A stretch of DNA of 64,000 nt from Bigelowiella natans CCMP2755 (lineage: Eukaryota; Protista; Cercozoa), in the NCBI GenBank assembly GCA_000320545.1, contig ADNK01003061.1, positions 1-64,000 of the forward strand. Direction: 5' to 3'. The notes under the pieces are model-generated. The model saw nothing but the letters and a program-made list of their open reading frames with translations. It was not told where the DNA came from and did no database searches. Below are positions 4,258 to 63,638 of the stretch, one piece after another. The position numbers and the translations under genes were made by a program. Each line of letters starts with the position of its first letter. The stretch's first letter is position 1.

Positions 4258-4304
<47 letters not shown>

Positions 4305-12147: not shown

Positions 12148-12243
<96 letters not shown>

Positions 12244-24491: not shown

Positions 24492-24844
24492 ATTGCCGTG
24501 CATGGTGCATGGGACCACAATGGACTCGTGATCCATGTGTCAGATGCCAACGTGCACATGTCCCGTGTCACTAGTGTCCATTGTGACTCAGCATGAGTCC
24601 ACACACATCATCATGGCACTCCGCATGCACAATGCTGCTGCTGATCTGGTGGTCCATTGCAGTGACATGTAGACAGCTGGACAGCTGGTGCACAGCTTTC
24701 TGGCTTTGCATCATTTGTGCCGCCCGCAAATGAGCTACGCATCCGCCGTGTGCTGAGGTGCAGGCGCTGTCTGCCATGCTGTGACGATGTTGTGCATGCA
24801 TCTGTGATTGTGTGCCTCTGTTCGCGCGCCTCGCATGTTTGAGC

Positions 24845-29745: not shown

Positions 29746-30320
29746 TTGGCTTTATCTATGGGAGCATCTGTAAGCAGAGATGCTTTCAGGATACTCGACC
29801 CAAATGTAGTCTCTAAATATTTTTCAATGAGCGCGCCCCAACGCTCACACATACTTTATTACTCTCTAGAATCGAGGTTACGCGACACTAAGGGAGCTTC
29901 GATGTTTAAGGTCGCACACGCGATCTGAATCCCTACAATCTTTCCTGGAAGCAGTAGCGAAATCAAACTCGAAAGAAAACATGGTAGCCCAGGACGCTTT
30001 CGTCGAAAGCTTCAAGAGAGCCAAGAAAGTGCATCCGACACTTTTGACGGATTTGATCGAAGCAAAACGGTTTAACATTAATAGAAAAATCATCCCCGAG
30101 CTCATAATAACCATTGGATCTTAGATTCCCACAGAATACTCACAACATTTTGCGCCAGTATGGAAAGAGACTCCATCATAATTCTAGCTTTCTTCTCATC
30201 AGAAATGTCGATACCGTGCGTAAAGAAAGCGAGCTGAATAAGTTGCGGCTGAAATGTTTCGAATACAAGCGACATCTTCGAGGAAATAATCCAAAACATG
30301 AATCGAGGGTTGGTTGTTAG
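29746..30320 (+). pseudogene. Possible degenerate coding remnant
   Basis: Protein-like readings continue across adjacent frames broken by stops; no family recognised. Confidence 0.25.
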
Positions 30321-30414
30321 TGACAGACGAGTCTAATATCTTTTGTGCCACTCACCCGAAACATGCTTTATATGTTAACCCCTTTTTTGGATGTTGATTA
30401 AAATCATCGATGAT

Positions 30415-31523
30415 ATGAATAAGCCAACAATGTGAGAATCTTCCTGTTCCATATCAGAATATAAGGAGGGCGATCCTAGAAGTAGAGGTTTTAGAAGCTA
30501 AAAATCTACCAATGCTGGATGCAAATGGTAATTTAAACACATTTTATTCATTTCTTTTTCTTTTTGAGCTCACCGCCAAACATTGCATGTCGATGTCGAA
30601 GGCACCTTCCATTTTCCCGTGCATAGTCAGAATTCTAACCGAGTCTCTCTCTCTCTCTCTATCTATCTCTCTCTATTTCCAGGAAGCGTAGATCCATTTG
30701 TCATCGCTAAAGTCGATACAAGCCGTCCGCAATACACCATCACTAACAAACAAAATAAAAACCCTATTTGGAACGCTAAGTTCTTTTGGGAGATTCAACT
30801 AGAAATCCCAGGCGCAGGCTCTGCTACCGCTTCCAAGATAGAAGAGAAAAAGAAGAAAATAGTTGCGACTATGACAGGGGCCTCGGGAGATGACGACGCT
30901 GTCGAAGCTGACCGAAGTGAGTCTCTATCAGGCACAGCAGCAAATCCGGGCTACCTTCAACTGGAGGTCACCACCACTCTGCTTTAGATACATGCAGATC
31001 TTCTTTGGCTGAACAGACATTAGGAGCATTATTATTATGATTTAACTTATCATCTTTGTTTAATGCTCTTCTCTCTGCAATGCTTATACAGGTGTGGGAC
31101 CTTGATTACGCATCAGAGAATGATGTCATAGGTATTATATTATCCACTGAGCTTTGTCGATTATACTGACCCATTATATCTTCCGTTTGACGTCACTCTC
31201 GTTGTTGTTGTTCTCACGGTTGGATGTAAACAGGGCACATTCACATTCCCCTTGCTCTGGTCTTGGCAGAGCCCCCTTCATCTTCCCCTCCCTCTTCTTC
31301 TCCTTCACCAGCAACCACAGCTACACTCTGTGATTGGTTTGAAGTGATGCGGACGCCCCAAAGCCCCCACCGCACTGGTCATCATGACGAACCAGCTCGC
31401 AGGGTGCCAGAGCGTGGGATGGAAAACGCTGAAACTAAAGACCCTGACCCGAAATCGCTCTATTCGTCGTTCTCACGCAATGGAAACGATGAAAGTCCAT
31501 TTCCCGCATCTTTAGGTAATAGC

Positions 31524-31557
<34 letters not shown>

Positions 31558-31995
31558 CAGTAGCAGCAGATGGAAGATATGCTTGATGCAGCATGCACCT
31601 ATCGTCTCTCCACGCCGTAGAAGCACGCACTTGATATATTCGAAATGCGGTTTTCCTCTATTTTATGTTCTTCCTCTCCTATTGCAATCAGGAAAAGTGC
31701 TGGTGCGTGTAAGTATTAAACACCTCTCTTCACAAGAAGACGACAGGAGCCCACAGCTCAGCAATGAAGATGTGCAAAGGGTCATGAGGAAAATGCTCAC
31801 AGCGTAGATTAGCACGTGTTAGTCATGTATAGCGTGCATGAGTATAATAGCCCTTCCCCCCATCGCAAAAAACCACGCCAAACACCCACAGCAAAGTAAT
31901 TGTACGCGTTGATAACGTGATAGAAAGAAAATTAGACATACTTCAGGATAAACCAGCGGTCAGCCGCCATTGTGTTGTCATGAACGATCGGGCTG

Positions 31996-32038
<43 letters not shown>

Positions 32039-33350
32039 CTTCAATTTAGGTGGTCAAATCCCTGCGAAAAGCATTAGCCCCGTTGTATGAGTACGAGGTG
32101 TTATCACTAACGTTTCTATGCAGTGCCAACACGAGAGACGAGTCATAACACCCCGCATCATCCTCCACGCATAGCCCTTCTGAAGACTCGCCCTATCTCG
32201 CCTTCCACATGGTGTTGTTTCGCGCGTAGGCTAAGAACGACAAAGTGGCGAGATTGCAGCATCGATCTCAGGTGTCGCACGGAGCGTCGTCGCGCAACAT
32301 AGCACAACGAATAGCGTCTAAACTTACGTATTAGTATCAGTAGCGTTGTCTCTCACTCCTCTATTCAACAAGCGCTCAGAAGATTCGCACAGCTGTTGTT
32401 GTTGCTGTTATCCCGCCATTGTGACGAACAGATGCTTGCGTTAGTAATTCTCTGTATTAGAAAGGCGAATCGAAACCGCCTCCTTCGCTCACACCGTTTT
32501 GTTGTTGGTGCTATTTCCTTTTAAAACAAGCAGGTCCTCGTCAGCCACTTCCCTGCAGAAATAGAGACCGTGCACAGCCGTTTTGACCACGTTACTCTCA
32601 CTGTTAGCGGAATGAATGGTAGGTGTTGAAGAAGAAGAAGAAGAAAAAGAAGAAGGATAAAACAGCATCACTAGATAGTTTACTCACGGCCCGTGTAAAA
32701 CACATTTTTGACTACCACTGCTACAATTACTACCACGCCCTGCCCCCCCTCCTCCCTCTCCTAGTCGCTAAAGGACGGCTAGTGTGCACAGATCTTCGTG
32801 TGGTAAGTGACTAAACTAGCTATTCAATTGTGCGAAGAAGAAGTATGCTGCTCTCAGATGGGAGAAAGAGGGAGTGAGGTTTTCGCGGAGAGGAGGAGAG
32901 AGGAGGAAAGACAGGGGCGAGAGACCGCCAGTAGAGATATAGCCAAAACGTTAGCGCGAGGTGCATAGATAGAGGTCTGTTTTGGCTCGCAGGTATTTCT
33001 CCCCGAATCAATATTGCAAAAAACCGACGCGAAAGAAAGCAACAACACGAAGAAAATGGACGACATTTTCGAGCATTGCGGTAGTTGTAAGACCCAAAAA
33101 CGATATCCAATGGCCACCTTATGCTAACTGCGCGCGTGGTGTTTTCACGTTGCACTCGAGTTTCATGCGACTACACACCAGGGCTCATGCTGATACACTA
33201 TTCATAAAATCAAAGACAGATGATATAATATTGATTCATAGTTTGAGAGTTTTTAGCTTCAGGATTGCTTACATCCTTATTACAAACATGGAGCAAAACT
33301 CAACGTTTTCTCTTCTCTTTCCAGCTGTGCCTCTTATTATTACTATAGAA

Positions 33351-33390
<40 letters not shown>

Positions 33391-35920
33391 ATCTATAATG
33401 CTATCTCGTTAAACTTATTCTGACACGGAACGCCGATTTTATGTGAAAACGATAAGGCCTCGACTGGACTGAGCGTCCTCTCAGTATTCCCCTGCAATTG
33501 ATGGAGAAAGTTTCTATGCAGCAGACAAACGGTGTGCTACTACTACTACTACTACTACTACTACTATCATTGCTACGACGACTGCTACTATTACCGCAAG
33601 CTTATTCGAGCATCATTTTTCCTCGTTGTTTCTTGCCCATTTTCTTAACATCTCGCCAAAAACATGTATCACGCTATGATTCACCGTTACGCAGACGTTA
33701 CCAAGACCCCACATGGCTTTGTGGCCATCAACACCATTCACACGAATCCCTGTGAGTAGTGTGTACGAATAGCCGTTGTAGCCTGCTTTCACTCAGTGAT
33801 TCATCTATCCAATCCATCAGTAAAAGAAATATTTACAAAAGATTTGTGGCAATTACACAAGTTTAGTGGCAAATGTGATGACGTTATCTTGGTGATACAG
33901 CCATCCATCTCGGCTGTATGTGTGTGCCCCCGTATATAAACCTAGATCTGTTATCGTGTATGTGTGTGTGTGCGCGCGTGTCGTAATCATGATCTTTGAG
34001 GACAGCGCTTGCTGTCCTGCCTATCTGGTTTCAGTTTTTGTGATTTAGCTCCTTGTGGTAGTTATTCCTCTCTCTTTTCCGATATTTATTTGTAACAAAA
34101 TTGTTTTCTTCTCAAATACGTTGCTTGATCATGCCCCCCCCCCCCTCCCCTTCCCCTCTCTAAGTCGGTGGAATGAGATACGGACAAGCACAAGCCGAGG
34201 GGCAAGCACAGAAGAAGATGCTGCTCAGTCGACTTCACCTTCATCAAAGTATTCCATTATGCTCTCGTGCTTGCATGTGCGTGTGTTGGAGAACAAATAT
34301 CTATTTGTGGAAGGAGAGAATGTTACTCGATCATCTGCACCGTTGCCGCTCATATGTACCACCCGCCGGTGAACATACGCTATGCATTTCAAGCTGCTAT
34401 GAGAACTAATACTAAGTCGATGCTAAGCATTCGATCGGAAATAGAGTTGAATTTATCGAAATGTTACTGCTGCTTTTTCACCAGAGAACTCAAGCGGAAA
34501 ACCCTACCGGGACTGCTCAAAGGAGGAGGGGGTCATTATACGATGAAGTGTTGATATCGATGATGTTCCTGTCGGGGCTCGGCTCATTCTGAAGAACAAA
34601 CAACATATATTGATTCCATATCATCGGTCTGACATTGCATTCACCTGAACGCAGACCGCTAACACGAAAAGCGCAAACATAGGAGAAGGAACGAAGCGAA
34701 GGAGAAACGCATGCACCCCGAGGACCAAAGGTTTGATATATTTATATTTTCCAACACTACTGCACAAAAACAACAAGAGAGGTTAAATACCACGACGCCC
34801 ATCACTACTACATTTTCGTGGATGGAGCTGCCGTCATCTTCGGCCTCACCCGAATAAAGACACTTTTATATTCATACCCTCTATCACGGGAGACTTTGGT
34901 GCAAACTAGTGGTCTTTTACCGATCAGCCGTATCCTGCATAAATCTGATTTTGTGCACCGTTCTTGTCTAGAAGGCACTCGCGGTGCCAAGGAGTCGAAG
35001 TCCAGTTTTCGCTGCAGCAGAATTCGTAAGAAAACAATGGCTCACGAAGCATTTCTACGAGGCTGTGCAATCATGTCTTTTTTGTTGTGATGAACTCTCT
35101 GAAGAGCGATACGACTTAAAAAGCTACTGATTTTGTCTGTACCCAAATACTAGTGTTCTTCTTTAAGAGTACAACAATGAAAAAAACATATATTTCTTTC
35201 TTTCTTTGCATCTCCCAGGCATCGAATGCTGGGACTTCCGTGTGCTCGATCTGGTCATAACACATCGTTTCCTTCGGTCATTTATTACGAGTCTAATTTA
35301 CTGCCCCCCTCCCTCCTCCCCCCCTTCTCTCCTTCCTCTCCAGACATTTTGGACTAAGACTAAAAGAGGAGAGCAGAGAATCAAGAACTTAAAGATGTTA
35401 CTAGAAGGTGTTATCTGCAGCATTCTCGGTCTTGTTATCAGACGATATTGAGAGCTGCCGTTGCATTAATCAAAGAATGCACTGGCCACGAATCTAAACC
35501 AGCTTAGTGTACATGGGAAGGAGCTCATCATACGGCAACTAACATTATAGGTTACGCGGCTACAAGATACTATTTTGGAGGGACTGTCTCAAAGAAATCG
35601 GCGCGTTTATTCCGCAGGAAAGCCAACCAAAGAACGAGTTCCTCCAAGGAACCGAACAGTTGTTTTCCCTATGATCTTGAGAGAGAAATGAGGCGACAGA
35701 AATTGGTGATACCATATCGAAGGATAATTGTTGTACGTGTAGTACGTATGTGTATTCTAAGGTCTTGTTGAGATATGCCAGCGCAATAGAGTGTCTGAGA
35801 TTGCTAAATCATAATCTAAACGAAGACATTCCATAATAGGATATGAAGGAATGGCGGATTTCGAGATGTAATACCATATATAAAAATGCATATCTAAACT
35901 AATAAATAAATTTATACAAA

Positions 35921-41612: not shown

Positions 41613-43529
41613 CGTTGTAATAAGAAGGCTTGTCGGTTTCCCCTTAGTTTAGCCGTGCGTTATACCGAGCTAGATTTCGAAATAAAGAATGCAACATGAT
41701 ATGTTGGTATTAATGCCTACGACAAAATGTGACCTTCCCCTTGCAAATTGCATCTTGTGCGTATAAAATCCGTAGGTCCACAACGTGCCACGATTGCGGC
41801 AATAATTTCACATGGTTATCATAGGACAGGGATTAGAGGGCGGGGGTGGGAGAGAGACCGGGTGGGAATGGTGGGTGGGGCGATAATCCTTATTAGAATC
41901 TAATTCAAAAAGATTAATTGATTTCATTTCCCAGATGTAATATCAACTGATATCTGCAGGTATATAAGGCGGCACCATTGCAGAGCATGTGGTCGCTTGT
42001 TTTGCCATAGGTGCTCTAGCCAGAACATGGCTTTGCCTCAGTTGGAGCTGCACACGCCAGTGAGAGTATGCGAGAGATGCGCTGATAGTCAAGGTCGCTT
42101 TGTTTTCTTCTCTTCTGCAAAATTTAGCCATTGCATACTTCCGAACTCATGAAATTTTAATGATCTCTCTCTCTCCCTCTCTCTCTTTCTCTCTCTCTCT
42201 CTTCAATATTTTCTCTCTTTCCCCCTCCCTCTGTATTTGTGTAACTCAAAAATAACTCGAAAGGGAAAGTAGTAGGCCAGGGGTTTCGCACAAAGGCTGC
42301 CACCCAGCAACGGAGGTAAGATCTTGTAGTTTTGCACACCATGTCCTCTGAGCAATACGGATGCCGATGATGTCATTGTTGTTAACTGGCATTTCATTGA
42401 ATCTACATTCTAGAGTACGTCGGATGTGAAAGATTTGTTTTGTCGCGTTCGAATGGCATTTGATTGCGCTGAATTGTTCTGTGACCACTGCACAGCAGGA
42501 AAAACACCTGGTGGAACTAGGGCAATTTGTCCTCACCATGAACATGGCAGCGTCTTTAGCTTTCAATGCGTTCGATGATGAAGCTAATTGCCCGTGGGGA
42601 CACCAGCTAGCCAGATGGCATCAGCTAATCAGCTACGGATGTGAAGTAGTTGTCTAGTTGTGTGAGTCGTCTCAAGGTCTTCAATCTTCAATGCCACATG
42701 TCAATTGACAAAGATTGAGTTGGAAATTAGTTCCTGAAAACAATGCCGTGTGCCTGTGCATCTCGCCCTCCGTGAAAACATGGACAACGCCCTCATCAAT
42801 GCGAGCAAACTAGCAAGTGGTCCAAATGCATGCTGCCTCGTAGCTTTGCATGACACCAACGTCGCACACGCTAGCACGTGCACTGAGTGCCGCAAGAAAA
42901 GTGCGCGATTATTGCGGCGGACATGCTGTGCTAGTGTGTGTGATGTGCAAGTAACAATGATGACAATGATCACAACCGTCAATGGCGGGGCAGTGTGCAA
43001 GGCACACCTCGCAAAGCGACGCAACTGCAACTTGTGATGCCATCATTAGCGGTCACAACAATTGCCATCATCATCACTTGCACATCACACATCGCAAAGC
43101 GATGCGACAGCATCATGCGACTGCATTGTCATGCTGTGTCACATCACATTGTTGTGCTCATGTTTTGAAGGGGGTGTTTTCAGGGGGAGGGGGTTCCACA
43201 CATCAAAGTGTGCAAGTGCTTTGATGTGCATGTGCACACATGTCAAAAAGTTTTGTTTTGGAAAGCCCCATGAACCCCCTCAATTTGCAAAATGAAGGAG
43301 GTCAGAAAAAAGCACTGATCAAAGTGGGGGTCTAAAAAAAAATGAAGAAGCATGCGATGTCATTGTGTGCTGTGTGCCGTGCCGTGCTGTGTGCTGTGCC
43401 ATGCCATGTGCTGTTCTGTTGCGAAGCGATGTGCCGTGCCGTGCGGTGCCATGCGACTGCTGTGCATGTTGGGATGATGCCATGTGCAAAGCAAAAGGGT
43501 TTTAGCAAAGTTTTGTGTGATGATTGCAT

Positions 43530-43760
43530 TTCCAATGCTTCAAACAACTGGATGATCTCATCGCATTTTCTTTCAATCGCAAAAGAAAGTGCTGTTTTGT
43601 CATCGTTGTTCTTTGCTTCCACATCGGCACTGTTTTCAATCAATGATTCTAGTGTTGTTGTCTTCTTCTTTCTACTTGCCCAAATGAGTGGAGTGTTGTT
43701 GTCATTGTCTTCCGCATTGATGTCAGACACATTGAAGTTGTATTTGGAAGACATGGAAAA
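43530..43760 (-). pseudogene. Ankyrin-repeat fragment abutting the left TIR
   Basis: DINAEDNDNNTPLIWAS...LIENSADVEAKNNDDKTALSFAIE; the frame runs into TIR sequence and is TpA-depleted. Confidence 0.75.
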
Positions 43761-45014: not shown

Positions 45015-45583
45015 TGGCATGACAATGCAATGTGACACAGCACAACAATGCAGTCGCACAATGATGCTGTTGCATGACATAGTCGCATCACTCTGCGATG
45101 TGTGATGTGCAAGTAATGACAACAATGATCATTACAACCGCTAATGATGGCATCACAAGTTGCAGTTGCATCGCTTTGCGAGGTGTGCCTTGCACACTGT
45201 GCCGCCATTAGCGGTCATGATGATCATCATTGTCATTACTTGCACATCACACACCTAGTTAGCTTGTGTGGCTACACATCATCCATGTTCATTGTAGCCT
45301 GAGCTATCTTAGCGCACACATTGTCAACGTATCCACCTTTTTACACCACTTGCCTCAATCTATCAACATCTGCCTAGTGTCGTTCAACTGCTTCATTGCA
45401 TTGATCATTGGTGAGTTAAGTCTAGAAGTGTGCAGTGGATTTCACACCACTTGTGTTTGAACACAGCAGTGCATGTGTTTCCTTGTTCTTACTATTTTGA
45501 GTTTCGGAAGGTTGAGTTTTAATTGTACTGGATTGCCGTAGCGCTAATTCAATGAACTCCAAATCAATTTGACACCGACTCAT

Positions 45584-45838
45584 TCACCGTACATTGGAGT
45601 CATCATCACCCTGAACAGGGTCGGAGCTCTTTTCCTCCTCATTGGGAGCGGTGACTATATTTGGGTGCTTTTGTTTGAGATGGCGCGTAAGATTGGATCT
45701 GTAGCGAAATTTTTTGGAGCAATTAGGGCAGGTAAATGGCTGCTCACCACTATGCGACCGAAGGTGGGACAACATGTGGGAACGACCCCTTTTCTCTGCA
45801 TTGCACATCTTGCACCTGTATCGAAGATTCATCCGTCC
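45584..45838 (-). CDS. C2H2 zinc-finger protein, two fingers; last exon, copy 1
   Basis: YRCKMC...HMLSHLRSHSGEQPFTCPNCSKKFRYRSNLTRHLKQKH, with an HTGEKP-like linker. Confidence 0.8.
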   Translation of the reverse strand, partial: GRMNLRYRCKMCNAEKRGRSHMLSHLRSHSGEQPFTCPNCSKKFRYRSNLTRHLKQKHPNIVTAPNEEEKSSDPVQGDDDSNVR

Positions 45839-46114
45839 TGAGATTACGGCAAAAACATTTATACAGTGACATGATTTCCAAATTAGCAAACGTTTTAAAG
45901 TCTTTGAAAATCTCATGATATTTCAAAAAACAGAGTTTCAGAACTCCAAAACAAGATCAAGTCACGAGATCAAACTTCACACTCGTAAATAGATATTTAT
46001 AATCGAATTGTAAGTTTTATGTGACTTAAGTAATATTTCTCATTTAGACCTGGAGGTTTTAAGGAAAAAAAAATCTTTCTTTCATACATGTTTATAACAT
46101 TGTTAACTTACATT

Positions 46115-47041
46115 CTATTTCATCATTACAGTCGTCATGGAAAGACCTGTTTCTTTGTTAATTCTAAGCACAGCTGTCATCCCAACTCCTATCTCCAAGT
46201 TTTTGAGCTCTTCTGATTCCTGATATTCCTCATAATCTGTCACCCCAGTTGAAGTTTCAATATTGTCTTTTGCATCTTGTGCTGCTGTAGCGACAAATGG
46301 GTGGTCCGAACGAACACTGTTCACAACAGGTGTAGCAGTATATGTAATCGGAGGGGGGGCTGGCACACTGGCAATGGCGTAGCTGACGTGGGTTGACTCA
46401 AATCGAGTGGCTGGCAAATTACCCTGAGTTATTGGTGCAGGAAGCTGGGTAGGGATTAAATGGACAGGGGCTCCAACGATTACTGGATGACGAGGATGTT
46501 CTCTATCTTTGGGGGGGGGGAGGAGCACGAACCAGTAGCGTCCTTCTCCCCACTTGACGTGTTGGATTGCAATACTGAACGGGAGATAATGGCGTTTCTC
46601 TATTGGCACGCATCACCGGAACATGTTGCACTCTTGGTGTTTGATAAATCAGGGGCACTGGCGGTACCGTGCTGCTAATGCTGGAATATCCAATTGGCTC
46701 ATAGTTCGGGTACAACGGGACTTCTGGCTGATAAGCTCCCACGGTCTTCGTCTCATATGGAATCGTTGGTTGTATAGCATACACAACACCTATATTGCTA
46801 ATCTCGTTTTCGTAGAGAGTTTGAGATCTCAGAGGATTTCTTGGAACAGCTGGAACAACACGAATCTGCTCGTGATGTTGTGGATAGAGACCATTTCCAG
46901 CATTAACAAGTCTCGACGATGTCGCTTTTCCGGTTACTGTTGCATATCCGGAGCTTTCCTCTGCGTTAAATCTCTTGTCAAATTGGTTACGCACATTTCT
47001 CACGTCATTTCTTGGGATATGATAGGTGGGAGGCTGCTTCC

Positions 47042-48020: not shown

Positions 48021-50113
48021 GAAACTGCTATTACTTCATTACTCCTTATGCAAATAGACCAGAGAACGACAAGAAAACCTTCGTGGTTAAAAGCAAATTA
48101 CGAAAACAAATACCGCTCCTAATGACTGGTTTCTATGGGGAATTTTTTCCGTTTGAGAATTTGGGAGAAATGCCTGACGACTTGTTTCCCACTGCAGTAT
48201 TTTACAAAGATGAAGATGGAAAAAAGATGGTGGTTCAAGCATCTAAAGTCAGCACATTAGCGGATGAAGATGATGTTTATCGTTTCATCACCCCTAAATT
48301 CCATAAAGACTACATTGACCTTCACAAGGATGATATAGTCCATATTGAAAGTCTACCAAAACCTGAAGACGAATTTCTTAACGATACGGATGATGAGAAG
48401 ATAGAAGAAACTGTCAATGTGAACGACCAAAAGCGACCTGAAAGCGATGCTGATGTTGAAGCATCATTTAAAAAACTTGTAGAGAAGTATGAGCAGGGCA
48501 ATTTGGATGCTGAAAGAAAATACATTGACACTCTAGATGTAGAAATGTTGACAAAATTTGTGGAATGTGTTGTGAACATGTATCAAAATGAAGATGGGAC
48601 AAGTGAAATTGAACACAAGGTGACTGGAGTAGGGATGACAAAAGTTGACATTGCTAAAGCAACCTGTCAACATTTGCACAATATTGCTGAAGGAAATTCA
48701 CAAATTACTTGGGGAGAAGGTGATACTCTTGACAGAGAAGAGGTGGCGGAAATCTTATTGAAAGATTACAATTATGTTTGGGTTGGTCATTATCCACAAG
48801 CAATATTCTTTGAGAAGAGAAATGGCCAACAGAGGGTCATATATGCTACTGGAAGAGATGCGACGAAAGAGGTTGGTAAGAATAAAAACTGCTATTACTT
48901 CCTTACTCCTTATGCGAATAGACCAGAGAACGATAAAAAGACCTTTGTAATAAAAAGCAAATTACAAAAACGAATACCGCTTCCCTGTGAGAATTTCGCA
49001 AAAATGCCTAATGACTGCTTCCCCAAGGCAGTATTTTTCAAAGATGAAGATGGGAAAATGATGGTGGTTCAAGCAGATGAAGAACACTATGAGGATGGAT
49101 TATATTCTTTCAGCACACCTAAATTCCACGAAGGACATATATTTATTCCCGAGGATAATATAGTCCACATTGAAAGTCTACCAAAACCTGAAGACGGATT
49201 TCTTGACGATACGGATGATGAGAAGGAAGAACAAGAGGAAAAAAAAAAGAAGGAAGAAAAGCACAAGAAGAAGAGAATTGATATGATTTTGAGTAGTAGC
49301 GAGAGTGAAGATGAAGAGTCCAGCAGTGACGAAGGACAACAAGAAGAAAAGGAAACACCAAGAACTCCAGTGATGGAATTTTATTTTTCTGATGAAGCGA
49401 TGAAAATACTCAAAGAGAACTTGACAACGGAACAGTTCAAAATCGTCAATGCTGGTTTCAACACACAGAGAGGTGCTACAAAAGAGGCGGAATATCAACA
49501 GGAAATTGAAAGGTCCAAGCACCATGATGAGATTAAAAAGAAGTATAAAGTGCAAATAAAAAAACCCAGCGACTTGGACAAAGGACTACATGTTACTGAT
49601 GCTAGGATTGAAGAAATTCTGAAGAATGCTCCTCATTGCCCAGTGATGAGAAATGGGATTACCAAAAAATACTTCAATGGTTGGTTTGGACTCGTTCGTA
49701 AAAAAAAAGAAAGTGGAGGAAAACTTGCTCCTGCCTCAGTTGGATGCTTTCATTCAAATGGAATTTGGACTTTCAAAAATGCGAAAGAAAGGGAATTCCA
49801 CATCAAAGAGCATTTTGAAATGTCCAAAGAACAAGTCCCATTGAACCCTTCAAATCTCCCTGTTGATGAAGTGATGGATGTGCATCAGCATTCACAAGAG
49901 TTGAAAGAGGGTGAGAGTGCGAACAAAAAAGGAAAGAGACAAATTCAAGAGTGCATTTTGGATTCACACCACATTCAACGATTTGAGCATGAAATTCCTT
50001 TTGAACTCAAAATGGGACAAAGCACTTGGGTTGATTTGAAAGATGCGGACGGCAAATCACGACTGACACCAGATTCCTTTTGGTTCAAATCAGTGCAGGA
50101 AAAGAACACTTGA
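48021..50113 (+). CDS. Intronless hypothetical protein with an internally repeated domain and acidic/basic tracts (element cargo); N-terminus displaced to 43987-44107
   Basis: 676-aa ORF in which CYYF.TPYANRPENDKKTFV.KSKL...FP.AVF.KDEDGK.MVVQA...IVHIESLPKPED occurs twice; no family recognised. Confidence 0.7.
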
Positions 50114-50334
50114 TGATTTCTGCAAAAGATGTCAAAACACATTGTGTGTGAAGATCATCATGTGAAACTTTGCTAAAATCCTTTTGCTTTGCACATGCCA
50201 TCATCGCAATGTGCACAGCAGTCGCATGGCACCGCACGGCACGGCACATCGCTTCGCAACAGAACAGCACATGGCACGGCACAGCACACAGCACGGCACG
50301 CTAGCACGGCACACAGCACACAATGACATCGCAT

Positions 50335-51187
50335 TGTGGTCGGTCATGACCACCAAGTGCGTGCTTGTGTCACAGCATGCAGTTTTGTTCTAGTTTGGTC
50401 TTGGTAGTGGCATGTTAGACACATGCGTTTCCATGTGCAATGCATGCATGCTTGCGCATTTGCCTCAGGCAGTGCGACAGGCTTTCTAAGTCATGTGCAC
50501 ACTAGGTGGCATGCATGTGTTTAGTTTCCATCATGGTTTCTTTTGTGTGCAAGTTTGTGGACACATGTGAGCCTGATTGCATGGGTGCGCGTTGGCATGC
50601 AAAGGTGTGCATGTTGCATGCGTGGCATGAGGGTTTCTGCATGATGTCACATGGGTTTAGATGGCATATCAGCATGATGTGACATGTCAGCATCGTGTGG
50701 GTGATGGTCACATTCTTCCAGTGCAGCTTGATGATGAAGCACATGGATGGGGAAGCAGCACTAGGAAGTGATGCAGTTGCCCAATTCATGTGCATGTGTG
50801 GGGACAAAATGAGTTGGCAAGTTTGCGCATTGTGGCCCCGCTTGGGCCAGTGCGACATGGAACAAGTTGGGTTGCAAAAGGGAACTTTTGCAGCACAAGT
50901 CAGCGAAACAATGTCAGGGAAAAATGTCACCCTTTCAATCTGAAAATGGCGTGATGTGATGTGCTCAACTGAACTAGTTGCAGCAAAGTGAAACGCGCGC
51001 GCAAAAGTCAAAAGACCCGCGTGCGAGCGGTGATGTCCTCTTGGGATCTTGTTTTGGCATGCATGCTCAAGCTCCTCACAATGTGTTTTCATCATCAGGG
51101 TTTTGGTGTTTTGTTTTCAATGAGCATTGATTGCATTGACGTGCAACAACAAGCATCAGCTGGCAGCGCATCTGTTGGCCAATCACA
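50335..51187 (+). repeat. Gypsy 5' LTR
   Basis: Direct repeat of 57109-57961; tgtggtcgg...ggccaatcaca. Confidence 0.95.
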
Positions 51188-51188
51188 C

Positions 51189-51197
51189 TGGTGGCGG
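51189..51197 (+). promoter_or_regulatory. Primer-binding site tggtggcgg (possibly TGGTAGCGG, initiator-tRNA-Met type, before TA->TG)
   Basis: TGG begins 1 nt after the LTR end; the tRNA identity is inferred. Confidence 0.6.
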
Positions 51198-54100
51198 TTT
51201 TGCTTTGCAATGATGGATCAAGGGATCGACGAAGAGCCTCAAATCGACGTTTGGAGTCCCACAAGGGCGATGAGCAAGGTGGAGGTCAAAAATTCAAGTT
51301 CAAATGATGTTGAGAATGGAGAGGAGAGCAAACCGGATTCAGATGCATCAGCATTGGGGCCGGCGGCTTCCTCGGAGTCGGAAAGTTCTCAGGGGGAGGC
51401 TTCGCCCCCTCACAATCTGTTGGAAAGAGTGAGTGATCTGTCAATCTCGGATTTTGAAAAGGTTGCAGCTTTGGCATTGCAGATGGATGGCATCAAGGCC
51501 AACACGGCATTGGATTTCCGATGCCTGAAAGAAGCGGGTGGATTGAAAGAGTTCACTTGTGAACGTTGTGGAGCTGAAGGAACTTGTGCGGACACCTGGG
51601 AACAAGCTCTGCTCATGGTGGAGGACCCGGAGTGGAATTTGCCTGAGTTGAAAGGAAACAAAGTTCAACAGGTTTCTGTTGGCGAGGTTGCGAAAGCGAT
51701 GGAATCTCACCGGCGACACTGCCCTGTTGAAGAAAAATTGTGCGTGGCGGCTTCAAGCCCTTCCCAGTTTCGCCGGAAAGCCAGGGGCCTGCAACAAAAA
51801 ATTCTGGTTCGTGCAGAGCTTGCAGGGCAAAAAGATTTGGCTTTTGGTTTCAAACACTTCAAAACATGTCTCTCGCCTCACACCTTGCTTGGACTCCAGC
51901 GGGAGGCAGTTCGCAACAATCATGCGTTGGCCTCGCCAAGACAGCAATTTGATCTTGCTCTCCAATGTTTGGGTGGTGAGCAGGACCCAAACGAATTGGA
52001 GGAATTGTTTGAGGACCGATCAGGTGAACTGAGAACTGGGAGGTTCCAGCATGCAGACGTCATGCACAAATGTTTCTCGGACCTCCTTGCAGAATTCTCT
52101 GGTCCAGGACTGAGCAATGGAGATGAAGTCAAGCACTTTGGAAAACCATCACATGGGCATTGCTTGGCTGAAAAATTCGCAGCCCCGCTCGTGGGAGTGA
52201 GGCCAGGTGAAGTGGATGCCTTGGTTGATCACCTCCGGCCGTTTGAGGAGGGGCATCGTGGGGCCATGCCTGTGCGTTCTGACGTGGCTGGTCTGCCAGT
52301 GGGGAAAACACAGAAGGAATGCAACCACTTCAAGAAAGGGCGGTGCCAGCATGGGAATCGATGCAAATTTCTTCACGTGCAGGATGGTTTCCAGAAAAAT
52401 GAACCCAAGTGCACGGAAGAGCAGCTTGAACAGATGAAGCTGCAGGATTGCAAGTTGTTCAAGACGGGACATTGTGGGTTTGGAAATGAGTGCAAGTTTG
52501 AGCATGCGGTGGGACAGGGTGCGATGCTTCATGAAAGTGCTCCTGGTTTGGCGACCCACGCTTGCGAGGATGTTCCGGCTTTGGAGCCCCAGGCTTGTGA
52601 GAAGACTCGCATTCAGCCTGAAGGACCAGAATCCTTGGTGCTGGGAATTGAGGAGCAGTTGATGAGTCAGGGACAGGGAGTTGACCAGAAAAAGCCGTGT
52701 GACTTGGATCCCACCTTGCGCAGCAGGAAAAAGCTGAAGTGCTTCCTGCGTGGTGAGGAAGGGGCTCCAGCGGTGATGGCTCTAGCAGACGACGGGGCGC
52801 AGCCAACTTCAATTTCGGAGGGCTTGTGCCAGAGGCTCGCCCAGGAAGGCGTGCAGTTCAAGTCGAGGAGTGTGGCAGGAGTCATTGGGGGCCTTAACTC
52901 GTCGGTGACTGACAAAATTGTGCGGGAAGTTGAGTTTTTTGTTCAGATCAAAAAATTGAAAAAGTCGGGGGAATGCATTGGATTGAAAATTTTTGCATTG
53001 GTGCTTTCAGGTCCGGTGTCGCAGGACTCAGTGATGGGCATTGATGCGCAAAGTGTCTGCCGTGTTGTTTCCTTGAAGGATCCGGATCCTGCGAAACGTT
53101 TGGTGTCCATCAACGGAGACTTGGTGCACTCTCATCCGTGCAACGTTGATGTTGCGTCGACGGATGTTGCGACAGTGCTGGGGATGGAGATGGCGTCTGT
53201 GAGATTCCTCACTGATGCAAAGCAGAATGCTGATCCGAAGGTGAAAGGAGACGGAGTCTGTCTGGATGGTTTGTCGCCTGAAGTGCAGCGGGAATCAAAG
53301 GGGTCAGCAGATCATGATTTCATCAATGATCAAGCTGATGTCATCGAAGGTTTGGACCTGCCTGACATTGATGTGCAGTCAGTTGCAAATCCCATGCGGT
53401 CAGACAAGAGTGTCGTTGCAAAACTGGGGGAGATTTTGCCCATCTCCCAGTTTGGGGACCAGCGTGGAGTTGCAAATTCGGAGTTGTGTGGTGGGCATGT
53501 TCTGCAAATGCTGGACCGGATGGAAAAGGAGAAGGACACTGGTGTGTCGATGCTGCAAGGAATGCAGCAGTTTTGTCATCTCCGCATGACAGTCTGCAGG
53601 TTCCAGAAGCACCTGGTGGAGAAATTGCCCGAAGTGGGCAAATGCAAATCAAAAGAGCCACACGATGTTCAACGTTGGCTTGAGCCTGGTGTCAAACCAG
53701 TGCGGCAACGCCCGTGCCACCTGGAGCCAAGTGAGCTTGAGCTCATGAAATCAAAGCTTGACCAGATGGTGCAAGATGGGCTTTGTTTCAAAGTTGCTGA
53801 CAACACCTCGGAGTGGTCTTCGCCTGCCTTTGGAGTTTGTGACAAGGGAAAGGCGCTGCCGAGGATTGTGGTGGCCATGGGTGGGGTCAATGGCCTCACC
53901 CGGCTGATGCATGCTGTGTGCCCGGTCACCAAGGACACGATCCGTGGGCTCATGGGAGCAAATTGGGTGATCGTGTCGGATGGCAAGGCAGCCTGGCGCC
54001 AACTCGGAAGCACGCACTGTGCAATGATGGTGTTTGTGTTTGTCACGTTGTTCGGGAGCTTCGCGAGTGAGGGCCTGCCCATGGGCCACAAGAATGCCCC

Positions 54101-54801
54101 ACAAGTTTGGGCAGAAGAGATGGCGACCAGGTTCCTCGTGGGGATGCCTGACACCATCGTGCATTTTGACGACTTCTTCACAGTGGGTCAGTCGCCAATG
54201 CAGGCCCTCCTCGCATTTGCGTGCTTCGTGCAGCAATGTGAACATTGTGATGATCACCAGAGTGTGACTGAGTTGCACGTGTTCCCCAAGCGCCTTGCGG
54301 CGGTGGGGCTCATCAAGGAAGATGGGTCACATCACCCGGATCCCCAGCGCACGAGCGCCATGGACGAATTGGCGCGGCCTGTGAAAGGAAGGCGGTTTTC
54401 AAAGCACGTGCGTCGCATCATTGGGTTGTTCGTTTGTCGTTTGGAACACGTGCAAGGTTTTTGGGATGTGGCTGCGCCCATCAAAGCGCTGTCGGTCAAG
54501 GACGCTGTGCAAGAATGGACGGACGCCCACGACGCCAGCTTGGACAAGTTGAAGCGCATGCTCAAGGAAGCTGTGCTGCACGTGCCGGATTGTGAGTTGA
54601 TCTCTGTGGACGCGCCGTTCATCGTGGACACGGATGCATCCGATGCAGCTGGCGGCGCGACGCTGTCGCAGATCACAAATGGCAAAGAGAGGCTGTTGTC
54701 TTGCCATTCGTTCGCATGGAAGGCGAGCGAAAGGGCATGGCACATCGTGCGCAAGGAACTCACAGCGGGCGCAAAGGGACTGCATCGGTTCCAGCACACG
54801 A

Positions 54802-55217
54802 TGTCAGAAGTGGATGGCGGCGCGGTGCAGAATGCAGGCCAATGGCGCGATTGGGTCGAGGCAGGAAGGAAGGAAGGAAGGGCAGGAGGACAGCTGCACA
54901 AGCGGCTGCCTCAATTCCACGTTGAATTCTGACCTTTTTCACATGCATGCACCAAGTCAATTGCTCATCAGGCGAAATCACCTGAAACCAAACGTGCTGC
55001 AGCGAGCCAGGCAGTTGGGCTCACTTCCTTTGCTGCCACAAAGGAAGTGCATGCAGCGTTGTGCCGCGACATGCTTGTCGCAGGCACACAACTCGCCTGC
55101 ACTCGCAGCCTCTTGCTTCGTGCTTGTCGCAGCCTGCAAACGCCCGCAGATCTCTCTGCCGTTGCAGCTGGCTGCTCGAGCAAGCACTTCGCGCGCTGAG
55201 TGCAAAGCACTCCAACA
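54802..55217. mobile_element. Copia-type solo LTR (416 bp) nested in the Gypsy RNase H
   Basis: tgtcagaag...cactccaaca flanked by the 5-bp TSD cacga (54797-54801 and 55218-55222); termini resemble the LTR at 25351-25716. Confidence 0.85.
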
Positions 55218-57084
55218 CACGATCAAGGGCTGTCCCGTGCGTGTGCGCATGGATGCCAAGACTGCGCGACGTTTTGCGCTGCGTGGTCAGGACAAAGTGC
55301 AGCTGCCCTGCACAAAATTGAGTGCTGCGCATGCTGGTCATTCTTTGGTCGGAGTCGAGCACCGCAAGGGTGAGTGCCACACAAACGTGGATCCGTTTGG
55401 CAGGCCTGCTGCGGATGAAACGCGCGAGGAGAAGAAGCGACACCGGCAATCATTGGAGGCTTTGTTTCCCATGCACGTGGAAGCGGCCAAGTCCACTGCG
55501 TGCTGTGCCAAGGAAGTGTCTCTGTCTTCACGTCTGGCGCATGAGACCACGACAGACTTTGAGGTTGCTTGTGCATCTGTGTGCAGCATTGCGCCCACGT
55601 TGGAGTGTGGGGCGATGGAAGTGCGCATGGAGTCGCTGTTGCCGGAGCACAAGCTGGCGCAACAAGAACAGGATTTTGGCAAAGTGATTGCTGCGCTGCA
55701 GGATGAAGACAGCGCTGATCACTTGCTGGTGCGCTCGCGATGCAAGGTCGTGGATGGTGCGCTGCATCACGTGGGAGCTTTCCAAGTTGGTGACAGCATC
55801 TCGCTGCAGCTGTGTGTCCCAGCTGCAGATCGCATCAAAGTGATGCAGGCTCACCACGTTGATGACATGTCAAATCATCGCAATGCGAATGATTTGGCTG
55901 CCCGGGTTCTGCTCACTTGTCATTGGCCCGGACTGCAGCGAGATTGCCGAAAACTTGCAAGGGGCTGCCAAGTTTGCATGCGGACTGAGACACGCATGAG
56001 GCAGACCCCTCACCAGCAACGTGCCGACAATGAGCTGAATGGCACTGTCGCGGTGGACACCATTGGTCCGGTTGAAGGAACCAAGCATCACGTCCAAACG
56101 CTTTGCATCGTGGCCATCGGATGCATCTGTGCGCGGGCTGTTGAAAGGATTGGCTCGGCCAAGACTGCAGATTTCATTGTGACTTGCATTCTTCAGTGTG
56201 GTTGCCCCAAAAAGATCCTGATGGATCAGGGCCCAGAAAATGCAGGAAACACAATGACACATTTGCAGAATGGGCTGCGGCCAAAGTGCCTCAAAATCTC
56301 GGCGAAGAACAGCCAAGGGAACTCGGTTCTGGAGCGAAAGCATGGGGCTGTTGACAACGGGATCATGGCCATGCTGCTCCAGAACCTTGACGAGAGAACG
56401 AATTGGCACCAGCACCTGGATGTGATTGCGTTCAGTGCAAATGCCACCACCGATGAAAATGGATGCTCTCCCGCGAGGCTTTTGTTTGGACATCAACCAA
56501 AATTCCTCGCGGATGTGAAAGCCAAAAGCCTGGGTGTCCCGGACATGGTTCGGATGGATGAACGCATCCGGGGGCTTGAAAAAATCCGTTCACTTTGTGC
56601 CACGCTCAAGGAGGACTGTGAGCTTGCAAAAAATTTCAAGCGCAATGAAAAGCTTGAAGTCCAAGATTCTTTTGCTGTGGGAGATCTCGTTTGGTTGCAT
56701 CGTGAAGAAAATGGAAGCCAGAATGCTGTGACCAAAAAGCACCAAGTTGATAAGACGGGGCCAGTTGCGGTTGCATCGAAAAGTGAGAAGGGAAATGCGC
56801 ATGTTGTTGTTGATCTTGCTACGGGTTGCAAAAATGATGTTCATGCTGAACACCTTTCCCCGTGTGGCACTTTCAGGGAGCTCCCTCCACTGAAGGAAGT
56901 GTCGCCGGACAGTGCATGCGATGATGCTTCTGATGGTCCTGTGAGTTCTTCTGGCTCTTCAGATTCCATCGGACCGGCTGAGGGTCGGGTTTCGCGGGCT
57001 GATGTTCCACCTGGCAAGCGTTGCCGCAAAAAGGTGGATTTTGGTCCTTTCATTTCTTGGGGTGTGAGCCCTTGTTTTTCTTCC

Positions 57085-57105
57085 AAAAAAGGGAGGGGGG
57101 GGGAG
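57085..57105 (+). promoter_or_regulatory. Polypurine tract
   Basis: aaaaaagggagggggggggag ends 3 nt before the 3' LTR. Confidence 0.85.
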
Positions 57106-57108
57106 TGG

Positions 57109-57961
57109 TGTGGTCGGCCATGACCACCAAGTGCGTGCTTGTGTCACAGCATGTAGTTTTGTTCCAGTTTGGTCTCAGTGGTGGCATGTTGGACACGTGC
57201 GTTTGCATGTGCGATGCATGCATGCTTGCGCATTTGTCTCAGGCAGTGCGACAGGCTTTCCAAGTCATGCACACACCAGGTGGCATGCATGTGTTCAGTT
57301 TCCATCATGGTTTCTTTTGTGTGCAAGTTTGTGGACACATGTGAGCCTGATTGCATGGGTGCGCGTTGGCATGCAAAGGTGTGCATGTTGCATGCGTGGC
57401 ATGGGGGTTTCCACGTGATGTCACATGGGTTCAGATGGCATGTCAGCATGATGTGACATGTCAGCATCGTGTGGGTGATGGTCACATTCTTCCAGTGCAG
57501 CTTGATGATGAAGCACATGGATGGGGAAGCAGCACTAGGAAGTGATGCAGTTGCCCAATTCGTGTGCATGTGTGGGGACAAAATGAGTTAGCAAGTTTGC
57601 GCATTGTGGCCCCGCTTGGGCCAGTGCGACATGGAACAAGTTGGGTTGCAAAAGGGAACTTTTGCAGCACAAGTTAGCGAAACAATGTCAGGGAAAAATG
57701 TCACCCTCTCAATCTGAAAATGGCGTGATGTGATGTGCTCAACTAAACTAGTCACAGCAAAGTGAAACGCGCGCGCAAAAGTCAAAAGACCCGCGTGCGA
57801 GCGGTGATGTCCTCTTGGGAGCTTGTTTTGGCATGCATGCTCAAGCTCCTCACAATGTGTTGTCATCATCAGGGTTTTGGTGTTTTGTTTTCAATGAGCA
57901 TTGATTGCATTGACGTGCAACAACAAGCATCAGCTGGCAGCGCATCTGTTGGCTAATTGCA
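57109..57961 (+). repeat. Gypsy 3' LTR
   Basis: Direct repeat of 50335-51187; tgtggtcgg...ggctaattgca. Confidence 0.95.
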
Positions 57962-58809
57962 CGCATGCTTCTTCATTTTTTTTTCGACCCCCACTTCAAT
58001 CAGTGCTTTCTAGCTTTTTTATGATAGACATGCAATACACAATATATATAATATATATAGTGTATTGCTAATCTATTATTTTTCTGACCTCCTTCATTTT
58101 GCAAATTGAGGGGGTTCATGGGGCTTTTTGAAACAAAACTTTTTGACACATGTGCACACGTCTAGATGTGCATCAAAATGCTTGCACACTTTGATGCATG
58201 AAACCCCCTCCCCCCAAAAACACCCCCTTCAAAACACAAGCATGACAATGCAATGTGACACAGCACAACAATGCAGTCGCACAATGATGCTGTCGCATGA
58301 CGTAGTCGCATCGCTTTGCGATGTGTGATGTGCAAGCAATGACAACAATGATCATTGCAACCGCTAATGATGGCATCACAAGTTGCAGTTGCATCGTTTT
58401 GCGAGGTGTGCCTTGCACACTGTGCCGCTATTAGCGGTCATGATGATCATCATTGTTGTTACTTGCACATCACACACCTGCTAGTTAGCTTGTGTGGCTA
58501 TGCATTATCCATATTCATTGCAGCCTAAGCTATCTTAGCGCACACATTGTCAACGTATCCACCTTTTTACACCACTTGCCTCAATCCATCAACATCTGCC
58601 TAGTGTCGTTCAACTGCTTCATTGCATTGATCATTGGTGAGTTAAGTCTAGAAGTGTGCAGTGGATTTCACACCACTTGTGTTTGAACACAGCAGTGCAT
58701 GTGTTTCCTTGTTCTTACTATTTTGAGTTTCGGAAGGTTGAGTTTTAATTGTACTGGATTGCCGTAGCGCTAATTCAATGAACTCCAAATCAATTTGACA
58801 CCGACTCAT

Positions 58810-59064
58810 TCACCGTACATTGGAGTCATCATCACCCTGAACAGGGTCGGAGCTCTTTTCCTCCTCATTGGGAGCAGTGACTATATTTGGGTGCTTTTGT
58901 TTGAGATGGCGCGTAAGATTGGATCTGTAGCGAAATTTTTTGGAGCAATTAGGGCAGGTAAATGGCTGCTCACCACTGTGCGACCGAAGGTGGGACAACA
59001 TGTGGGAACGACCCCTTTTCTCTGCATTGCACATCTTGCACCTGTATCGAAGATTCATCCGTCC
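58810..59064 (-). CDS. C2H2 zinc-finger protein; last exon, copy 2
   Basis: Same translation as the copy at 45584-45838. Confidence 0.8.
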   Translation of the reverse strand, partial: GRMNLRYRCKMCNAEKRGRSHMLSHLRSHSGEQPFTCPNCSKKFRYRSNLTRHLKQKHPNIVTAPNEEEKSSDPVQGDDDSNVR

Positions 59065-59328
59065 TGAGATTACGGCATAAACACATGATTTCCAAATTAG
59101 CAAACGTTTTAAAGTCTTTGAAAATCTCATGCTATTTCAAAAAACAGAGTTTCAGAACTCCAAAACAAGATCAAGTCACGAGATCAAACTTCACACTCGT
59201 AAATAGATATTTATAATCGAATTGTAAGTTTTATGTGACTTAAGTAATATTTCTCATTTAGACCTGGAGGTTTTAAGGAAAAAAAAATCTTTCTTTCATA
59301 CATGTTTATAACATTGTTAACTTACATT

Positions 59329-60659
59329 CTATTTCATCATTACAGTCGTCATAGAAAGACCTGTTTCTTTGTTGATTCTATGCACAGCTGTCATCCCAAC
59401 TCCTATCTCCAAGTTTTTGAGCTCTTCTGATTCCTGATATTCCTCATAATCTGTCACCCCAGTTGAAGTTTCAATATTGTCTTTTGCATCTTGTGCTGCT
59501 GTAGCAACAAATGGGTGGTCCGAACGAACACTGTTCACAACAGGTGTAGCAGTATATGTAATCGGAGGGGGGGCTGGCACACTGGCAATGGCGTAGCTGA
59601 CGTAGGTTGACTCAAATCGAGGGGCTGGCAAATTATCCTGAGTCATTGGTGCAGGAAGCTGGGTAGGGATTAAATGGACAGGGGCTCCAACGATTACTGG
59701 ATGACGAGGATGTTCTCTATCTTGGGGGGGGGGAGGAGCACGAACCAGTAGCGTCCTTCTCCCCACTTGACGTGTTGGATTGCAATACTGAACGGGAGGT
59801 AATGGCGTTTCTCTATTGGCACGCATCACCGGAACATGTTGCACTCTTGGTGTTTGATAAATCAGGGGCACTGGCGGTACCGTGCTGCTAATGCTGGAAT
59901 ATCCAATTGGCTCATAGTTCGGGTACAACGGGACTTCTGGCTGATAAGCTCCCACGGTCTTCGTCTCATATGGAATCGTTGGTTGTATAGCATACACAAC
60001 ACCTATATTGCTAATCTCGTTTTCGTAGAGAGTTTGAGATCTCAGAGGATTTCTTGGAACAGCTGGAACAACACGAATCTGCTCGTGATGTTGTGGATAG
60101 AGACCATTTCCAGCATTAACAAGTCTCGACGATGTCGCTTTTCCGGTTACTGTTGCATATCCGGAGCTTTCCTCTGCGTTAAATCTCTTGTCAAATTGGT
60201 TACGCACATTTCTCACGTCATTTCTTGGGATATGATAGGTGGGAGGCTGCTTCCGAGTAGTAGTAGTAGTAGTAGTAGTATCTCTGTAACCTATGAAACA
60301 AAGAATACAAGGTCGAACCTTGCAATCAATCTTGCAACCAAACCAGCTTTACCTCTCCTCTGTTTTTGATTTTCGCTATTACTGGGGACACATTCTCGTC
60401 GCCGCCTTTTCCTACTATCCGAAGTACTAAAACCTGTACCACATCAAACGCTGATGCCTAATGTTTATTATCCACATGTCTGGTTACTACCTAAGCCAAT
60501 CTGATGACTTTCAGGAATTTCTCTGGAAACTTCTGTGCCATGGCATTTAGCATCTACTTCCCGCTTGACCACATGCTCTCTAAGGCCGGTGGACATGGTA
60601 TTCTCATCACACACCTTCGCTCGCTTCTTTAGATCTAGTAGAGGTATACCCAGTTCCAA
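59329..60659 (-). CDS. Pro-rich hypothetical protein, intact copy; probably several exons
   Basis: 295-aa open frame at 59329-60216 plus a likely upstream exon in 60468-60659; no family recognised. Confidence 0.55.

Positions 60660-63597: not shown

Positions 63598-63638
<41 letters not shown>

Follow-up and report, generated by a model that had tools for sequence, protein, structure and literature searches.

A Ty3/Gypsy-like long terminal repeat (LTR) retrotransposon of Bigelowiella natans CCMP2755, located at positions 50335-57961 of a 64,000-nt stretch of contig ADNK01003061.1 (hereafter the window), has very probably been inactivated in the chromosome, after its integration, by a TpA-specific A:T>G:C hypermutation process of the host, the same one that operates in B. 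natans mutation-accumulation lines. TpA-only A:T>G:C hypermutation was measured de novo in such lines by Mettrop et al. (bioRxiv 10.64898/2026.01.13.699255). In that work, 231 of 302 de novo mutations fell in two viral inserts, derived from a nucleocytoplasmic large DNA virus (NCLDV) and a virophage, and 230 of these 231 were A>G or T>C changes, all at TpA (10.64898/2026.01.13.699255). An initial, sequence-only reading of the window had proposed an undescribed genome-defence system; the phenomenon is in fact already known, its discovery being due to the 2026 preprint. What the present locus adds is a clean natural experiment: its LTR pair, target-site duplication (TSD) and empty site prove that the process works on retrotransposon DNA that is already integrated.

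Loss of TpA and tyrosine from the retrotransposon

The 7,627-nt element contains 21 TpA dinucleotides, compared with ∼358 expected (observed/expected ratio, o/e, 0.05), while TG (o/e 1.57) and CA (o/e 1.70) are overrepresented, CG is still plentiful (o/e 0.70; 363 CpG) and the GC content is 0.53. This agrees with the composition described in the sequence-only reading. In the host-like 48 kb of the window TpA has an o/e of 0.84 and GC is 0.437, and the probability of finding 21 or fewer TpA in the element at the host-like density is ∼2e-122. Host DNA was also correctly said to retain its TA, and the host parts still hold twelve (TA)14-22 tracts. Fourteen of the 21 TpA left in the element are followed by G, and seven lie within CTAG.

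The two open reading frames (ORFs) of the element, 50988-54932 (1,314 aa; 50 His, 45 Cys) and 54634-57123 (829 aa; 36 His, 45 Cys), together contain no Tyr in 2,143 residues, as first noticed from the sequence. At the 71 Tyr columns of the untouched relative L032, the element carries His (28), Cys (21), Phe (7), Arg (3) or another residue (12), and never Tyr. The individual motif changes proposed earlier fared unequally. The change of QRPY to QRPC was found at nt 53706, and that of integrase YYWP to CHWP was found as YYW to CHW at nt 55918. The element does read CGCP, but the derivation of this motif from YGxP is ambiguous, the corresponding residue being H in L032 and F in L040. The suggested conversion of a YxDD reverse transcriptase (RT) motif to HFDD was mistaken: the canonical Y-x-D-D is absent, and the clade natively carries H-[FV]-D-D, with HFDD in L032 itself and HVDD in L040 and in the Tyr-rich marine-metagenome relatives P0002-P0004.

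The possibility of an assembly error was checked on reads. Each of three independent DNA runs gave a contig of ∼3.5 kb over 51337-54851 with zero differences from the assembly and at single-copy depth, so the TpA-free sequence is not an assembly artefact. The element is almost silent: 25 RNA-seq reads (2026 run, ∼6% sampled) fell on it, mostly on the LTR.

Conversion of TpA in integrated DNA

The LTRs of a retrotransposon are identical at integration. Those of the element now differ by 29 events, comprising (i) 13 TA-versus-TG/CA differences, (ii) five TG-versus-CA doublets, (iii) four CA-versus-CG differences, and (iv) seven others. Since most of these are of the TA type, the element carried TA at these sites when it inserted, and each LTR then underwent its own conversions within the chromosome.

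Copies and relatives were sought in the B. natans CCMP2755 assembly (G000; 91.4 Mb, 3,736 contigs). An untouched sister family of three copies, with 61% aa identity to the element, has a TpA o/e of 1.01 and 4.0% Tyr, so the objection that the family itself lacks TA and Tyr does not apply. At the TpA positions of L032, the erased relative L035 has TG (170), CA (154) or CG (20), and no TA. GC content rises from 0.467 in untouched copies to 0.53-0.55 in erased ones, a direction opposite to that of fungal repeat-induced point mutation (RIP) and of 5-methylcytosine decay, as the sequence-only reading had argued.

Every stage of the process is represented in family B, whose five copies have TpA o/e values of 0.80, 0.68, 0.32, 0.17, and 0.03. 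Their identity is 93-98.5% in the raw alignment and 99.0-99.7% with TA sites masked. The analysis covered 315 ancestral TpA sites, and polarity was taken from site patterns; singleton parsimony was dropped, as it was misled by parallel hits at hot sites. The patterns {TA,TG,CA}, {TA,CA} and {TA,TG} were found at 171, 65 and 64 sites, respectively, that is 300 TA-type patterns versus 12 of the CG type, which speaks against CG as the ancestor of the TG and CA pairs. Nine to eleven early conversions are common to four of the copies, indicating that partly mutated masters still transposed.

Conversion therefore acted on integrated DNA, after insertion, and independently in each LTR and each copy. 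The central proposal of the sequence-only reading, a targeted process that turns TA to TG on either strand of foreign or repeat DNA and not of host DNA, was borne out by the LTR pair, the relatives and family B. The same signature, also as proposed, marks other repeats of the window at 23976-25743 and 42750-43750 and the flanks of the element at 49700-50334 and 57962-59500.

Specificity, strand symmetry and flanking bases

In copy L041 of family B, A>G changes were found at 256 of 622 TpA, compared with one of 2,211 for all other adenines and none of 849 for ApA. In the saturated copy L043 a weak side signal was visible at CpA (14/701 versus 9/1,509), and this weak CpA conversion accounts for the presence of CpG at 5-7% of former TpA sites. 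TpA is thus hit at least 100-1000 times more often than any other adenine context.

The two products were formed about equally, with TG:CA ratios of 131:129, 116:94 and 150:157 in family B copies. Neighbouring conversions showed no strand coordination (same-strand z from -0.7 to +0.9 in five family B copies), and the pattern therefore arose from many independent single-site hits and not from a few processive single-strand events. When a site was converted in two family B copies, the product was the same in only 0.51-0.57 of cases.

The rate at a given site depended strongly on its neighbours. Classified by the 5' base, the TpA kept in L041 amounted to 1/95 after A, 8/85 after T, 12/73 after G, and 34/62 after C; by the 3' base, to 2/79 before T, 12/74 before A, 21/104 before C, and 20/58 before G. 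At the extremes, all 11 CTAG were kept and none of the 27 ATAT. Outcomes at asymmetric sites were nevertheless even (TG 55:CA 54 at CTAH and TG 56:CA 55 at DTAG), which means that the flanking base pair sets the rate of a site whichever strand is hit. Next to a C:G pair, TpA is converted more slowly, to the same extent on both strands, so that CTAG is converted last and ATAT first.

The conversion of TpA to TpG or CpA cannot make a stop codon (TAA becomes TGA or CAA; TAG becomes TGG or CAG). Erased elements consequently keep long Tyr-free "zombie" ORFs, which are annotated as genes.

Targeting of kilobase-scale domains

Conversion is patchy. In the saturated copy L042 (contig C550 of G000, 30113-35164), about 70 consecutive TpA are untouched in a block with graded edges (z 12.6), the result of targeting limited to a domain, or else of recombination with a copy that was untouched. 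Two partly converted copies, at C1679 158746-163797 and in L042, still have 250 and 106 TpA, respectively. In L040, early hits are concentrated in the 3' half (z 4). Three sister copies of 5.2 kb, 99.85% identical to one another, keep all of their 376 TpA.

Immediately upstream of the older repeat that flanks the element, positions 49700-50153 (no strand assigned) form a TpA-free, TG/CA-rich stretch within a 475-nt gap between the TpA at 49699 and 50174. No other match to this stretch was found in the genome; either the process spilled over into unique DNA here, or the stretch is an old insert that has escaped recognition. A hypermutated third unit of the 864-nt tandem repeat that lies upstream was considered for the interval 49750-50146 and rejected, as the alignment was without homology.

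The untouched near-identical copies and the erased, apparently single-copy DNA together indicate that repetition does not suffice as a trigger and, apparently, is not needed either. What is converted are kilobase-scale domains, not repeats as such. The NCLDV target insert of the mutation-accumulation lines is likewise single-copy (10.64898/2026.01.13.699255). The term "RIP-like", used in the sequence-only reading, thus holds as an analogy, in that transposons are hypermutated, but not with respect to the trigger.

On contig C236, the erased copy L036 (59735-61978; TpA o/e 0.00) lies ∼5 kb from the related untouched copy L034 (66625-68850; o/e 1.01). Lying so close together, the two copies offer a natural comparison in which the targeting mark could be mapped.

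Alternative explanations

Several points weigh against inactivation of the element by the host process seen in the mutation-accumulation lines. The long-term ratio of TpA hits to background is 43-7,700 per copy (median about 500-700), below the ∼3e4 derived from the counts in 10.64898/2026.01.13.699255 (211 hits / 6,169 TpA / 3,132 generations versus 3.5e-10), which implies that activity is episodic or delayed. The LTRs retain 17 TpA in 1,706 nt versus four in the 5,921 nt of the interior (15-fold per nt, p 2e-8), which misfits uniform exposure after insertion. No de novo event was seen at the locus; the three DNA runs are alike in the interior, where the four remaining TpA give little power, and LTR variants in these runs may be cross-mapping of the other LTR. 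A six-frame, exon-by-exon search of G000 for deaminases identified six CDA-fold loci (C980, C570, C3623, C3286, C1679 and C3588) and one ADAT1/ADAR-type locus (C2414), without lineage-specific expansion. Finally, TpA is its own reverse complement, and from the sequence A cannot be told from T as the attacked base, as had been recognised at the outset.

The last point leads to the alternative that survives best, although it is improbable: the same targeted process would act on the T of TpA, which after modification or oxidation would miscode as C, and adenine would not be deaminated. T>C and A>G are identical in sequence at the self-complementary TpA, and the strand-symmetric flank effect fits any duplex-level chemistry. 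Known T modifications (5-hydroxymethyluracil, base J) are, however, weakly mutagenic, while adenine deamination yields clean A>G, and clean A>G transitions are what is seen. A Tet/JBP-type dioxygenase was not detected either: the search of G000 gave no matches to Tet_JBP, OTT_1508_deam, NAD1 or MT-A70, which are weak negatives for a six-frame, exon-by-exon search of an intron-rich genome in which the controls were also unmatched.

Targeted nicking or patch repair by an error-prone polymerase, with no deamination of bases, is considerably less probable. Such a source would resemble Pol eta (WA>WG), for which WA, and TA more than other WA motifs, is the favoured site of A>G errors in somatic hypermutation. 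The lack of any A>G change at ApA in L041 speaks against it, as do the near absence of transversions, the spectra being essentially pure TpA transitions, and the confinement of the de novo mutations to A>G or T>C at TpA (230/231; 10.64898/2026.01.13.699255).

Two further explanations are very improbable, and CpG decay, intrinsic TA avoidance and editing at the RNA stage are all refuted by the LTR pair, the sister family and the stages of family B. The first is ADAR/ADAT-like A-to-I hyperediting of the transcript, fixed by reverse transcription. ADAR does prefer a 5' U, and the genome encodes one ADAT1/ADAR-type domain, but the hits are divided equally between the strands (Tyr>His 28 versus Tyr>Cys 21; TG:CA about 1:1), the LTRs diverged from each other after integration, and DNA-transposon-like repeats and the apparently single-copy flank are also affected. 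No RNA-DNA differences were seen on the nearly silent element among its 25 reads, too few for an editing test, and the de novo changes arose in integrated DNA (10.64898/2026.01.13.699255). The second dispenses with a TpA-directed process and assumes that methylated CpG decayed to TpG/CpA or that the family avoids TA intrinsically. It can point to TG and CA as products of 5-methylcytosine deamination too, to 11 CG-type beside 19 TA-type polymorphic dinucleotides in the LTR family of the element, and to a terminal inverted repeat (TIR) element at 23951-24491 that was TpA-free before its spread (copies 97-98% identical), but it is contradicted by the preponderance of TA-type patterns in family B, by a GC content that is 0.467 in untouched copies and about 0.55 after erasure, by the CpG o/e of 0.70 that the element still has, by untouched relatives rich in TpA and Tyr, and by the occurrence of His or Cys, through CAY and TGY codons, at conserved Tyr columns.

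Proposed mechanism

In the mechanism that we propose, adenine at TpA would be deaminated to hypoxanthine in DNA. The rate-limiting step may sense the duplex, by recognising it with two-fold symmetry or by opening the T-A step locally, and not a single-strand context, and targeting would follow a silent-chromatin or small-RNA mark. ADAT2/ADAT3 (Tad2/Tad3; Bn78255/Bn77986 in B. natans) are the candidate enzymes put forward in the preprint (10.64898/2026.01.13.699255). For these tRNA adenosine deaminases, the natural substrate A34 follows U33, which is a U-A context, and engineered TadA, as in adenine base editors, acts on DNA adenine; the enzymes read a single-stranded loop, whereas the flank effect described here is equal whichever strand is hit.

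A more specific proposal, possible and rather doubtful at present, is that the writer is a natural converter of adenine at TpA in duplex DNA, distinct from the housekeeping ADAT2/3 acting on single strands, that a chromatin or small-RNA mark, and not repetition, directs it to kilobase-sized silent domains, and that it also occurs in at least one other, uncultured organism (represented by contig L071, described below). Any candidate enzyme is constrained by a preference for TpA of at least 100-1000 times, weak activity at CpA, equal use of the strands, no processivity, a strand-symmetric C:G penalty, and domain-wise targeting.

Structure and insertion site of the element

All stranded features of the element lie on the forward strand. 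The 5' LTR (50335-51187) and the 3' LTR (57109-57961) are each 853 nt long and of the TG...CA type, with ten and seven surviving TpA, respectively. They are bounded by the 5-bp TSD CGCAT, at 50330-50334 on the left and 57962-57966 on the right. A loose poly(A) end of RNA reads at 50862, inside the LTR, may correspond to the R/U5 boundary; the reads could derive from any LTR copy of the family. By inspection, a primer-binding site (TGGTGGCGG) was located at 51190-51198, 2 nt past the LTR, and it appears complementary to a tRNA 3' end (...CCGCCACCA). A polypurine tract, also found by inspection, lies at 57085-57106, directly 5' of the 3' LTR.

The first part of the gag-like/pol frame (50988-54802), devoid of Tyr, contains two zf-CCCH domains (52314-52382 and 52437-52511), the RT (about 53700-54300, with QRPC at 53706 and the native H-F-D-D at 54162-54173), and RNase H (54516-54803). 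The second part (55216-57123), also without Tyr, comprises the integrase H2C2 zinc domain (55816-55992, with CHW at 55918), the integrase core, and a C-terminal tail. A frameshift between the two pol ORFs was considered and rejected, the split being due to a nested, TpA-free, multi-copy insert of 413 nt (54803-55215; no strand assigned), flanked by the 8-bp TSD CACACGAT at 54795-54802 and 55216-55223. The nested-insert region (query 4468-4884) matches many contigs at 75-92%.

The Pfam domains detected in the element are the two zf-CCCH, RT_RNaseH_2 and Integrase_H2C2, the last two in Ty3/Gypsy order. RVT_1, rve and a protease were not detected by Pfam in this copy; RVT_1 exceeds the Pfam cut-off in L040 alone, a relative with less damage (35.1 bits versus 29.6). 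More distant relatives are ordinary Ty3/Gypsy polyproteins with rve and a gag-asp protease. Structural hallmarks of Ty3/Gypsy elements are present (two TG...CA LTRs, a short TSD, a primer-binding site and a polypurine tract), and the element is an LTR retrotransposon of a divergent Gypsy-like clade, of which this copy has been further damaged.

The element was inserted into an older TpA-erased repeat, R (forward strand), whose left part occupies 50154-50334 and which resumes at 57962-58009 and about 58080-58480. A second copy of R (43309-43524, reverse strand) spans the empty site and carries the 5-nt target once. The two R copies differ by 23 TG-versus-CA doublets, which indicates that each was saturated independently. 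Within R, at 58017-58083, lies a very high-copy repeat of ∼65 nt (dozens of places, 92-100% identity) with two untouched (TA)4 runs, presumably a young insertion that gives the sharp right-hand return of TpA.

Other repeats of the window

An intra-window duplication (45017-46286 and 58240-59500) is 98% identical, and 13 of its 24 differences are of the TA type, indicating that the process acted after the duplication. The TIR element at 23951-24491 (541 nt, TIRs of ∼29 nt) is TpA-free, with a gap at 23976-24445, and copies on C1805 and C529 are 97-98% identical to it; at this identity, the loss of TpA predates the spread of the element, which means that an erased non-autonomous element stayed mobile. 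At 48022-49750, two tandem units of ∼864 nt, 80-89% alike over their first ∼390 nt, lie in a 676-aa ORF that gave no Pfam match. TpA is retained in these units, and the differences between them are, by eye, not of the TA type. The twelve (TA)14-22 microsatellites of host-like DNA are of strikingly similar length (e.g. 1725-1758, 12194-12237 and 63602-63635).

Relatives in databases and in other organisms

The nearest database protein is JGI Bigna1 147227, with no Tyr in 1,151 aa, which is encoded at 100%/99.8% in L036. Three further Tyr-free matches are, like 147227, labelled Bigelowiella natans in EukProt; two of them, Bigna1 147443 (L003/L027) and 145314 (L002), are likewise encoded at 100%. 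These matches identify the genome as that of B. natans. Erased elements have thus been called as genes (e.g. Bigna1 147227, 147443, 145314, and 147229), which calls for caution in annotation.

An exhaustive search with the untouched RT-RNase H-integrase region identified one Tyr-poor relative, P0092, on contig L071 (ENA ERZ4903317 NODE_35017, 1-2418). This contig has a TpA o/e of 0.33, TG of 1.59 and CA of 1.36, with 0.8% Tyr, and six of nine conserved Tyr columns are occupied by His or Cys through CAY or TGY codons. No DNA match to L071 was found in G000. This single low-coverage metagenome contig is a hint that the same process may act in another organism. A Tara Oceans metagenome scaffold (L072, 1-12828) carries two tandem Tyr-rich (3.5%) elements with about 72% protein identity to family B, and is an untouched relative in a wild marine organism.

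Relation to known systems and significance

The preprint also reported 324 TpA-depleted coding sequences, enriched in RT, endonuclease-RT and DDE domains, and 124 clusters of TpA-poor windows, and its supplement lists Bigna1 147227, the Tyr-free relative of the element (10.64898/2026.01.13.699255). Its main text refers only to "potentially transposable elements", without retroelements or CTAG, and names the strand only for product type (10.64898/2026.01.13.699255). The system described there and the one described here share the organism, the dinucleotide, the two products, the GC-ward direction, a comparable excess above background, and the targeting of foreign or silent DNA; they differ in that the former was shown on NCLDV and virophage inserts, and the present one on an LTR retrotransposon with its LTR pair, TSD and empty site. 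The flank effect, the 1:1 TG:CA ratio without coordination, the kilobase patchiness, the untouched near-identical copies, and the hint from L071 were not found in the main text of the preprint. A literature search for a named enzyme, or for the same signature elsewhere, returned the preprint only, other matches being to fungal RIP.

RIP of Neurospora and other Ascomycota is similar in that chromosomal transposons are hypermutated by dinucleotide-dependent transitions and end as dead copies, possibly with spill-over into the flanks. It converts C:G to T:A (CpA>TpA), lowers GC, creates stop codons, needs duplication, is premeiotic, and introduces many hits per event. The process described here, in contrast, runs in the reverse direction, cannot create stop codons, leaves near-identical copies untouched, affects apparently single-copy DNA, and shows no strand coordination. 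APOBEC3 editing of retroviral or retrotransposon cDNA and ADAR hyperediting of repeat RNA also represent deaminase-based restriction of mobile elements, and ADAR favours a 5' U. They act on a single-stranded intermediate and leave a clustered, one-strand signature fixed at integration, whereas here each site is hit individually, on either strand equally, once the element has integrated.

The phenomenon is remarkable as RIP in reverse: foreign DNA is hypermutated towards GC with dinucleotide precision. Should the more specific proposal hold, of a duplex-acting writer directed by a mark to silent domains and present in another organism as well, eukaryotes would have a genome defence of a new class, and the writer would be a naturally occurring base editor of adenine in double-stranded DNA.

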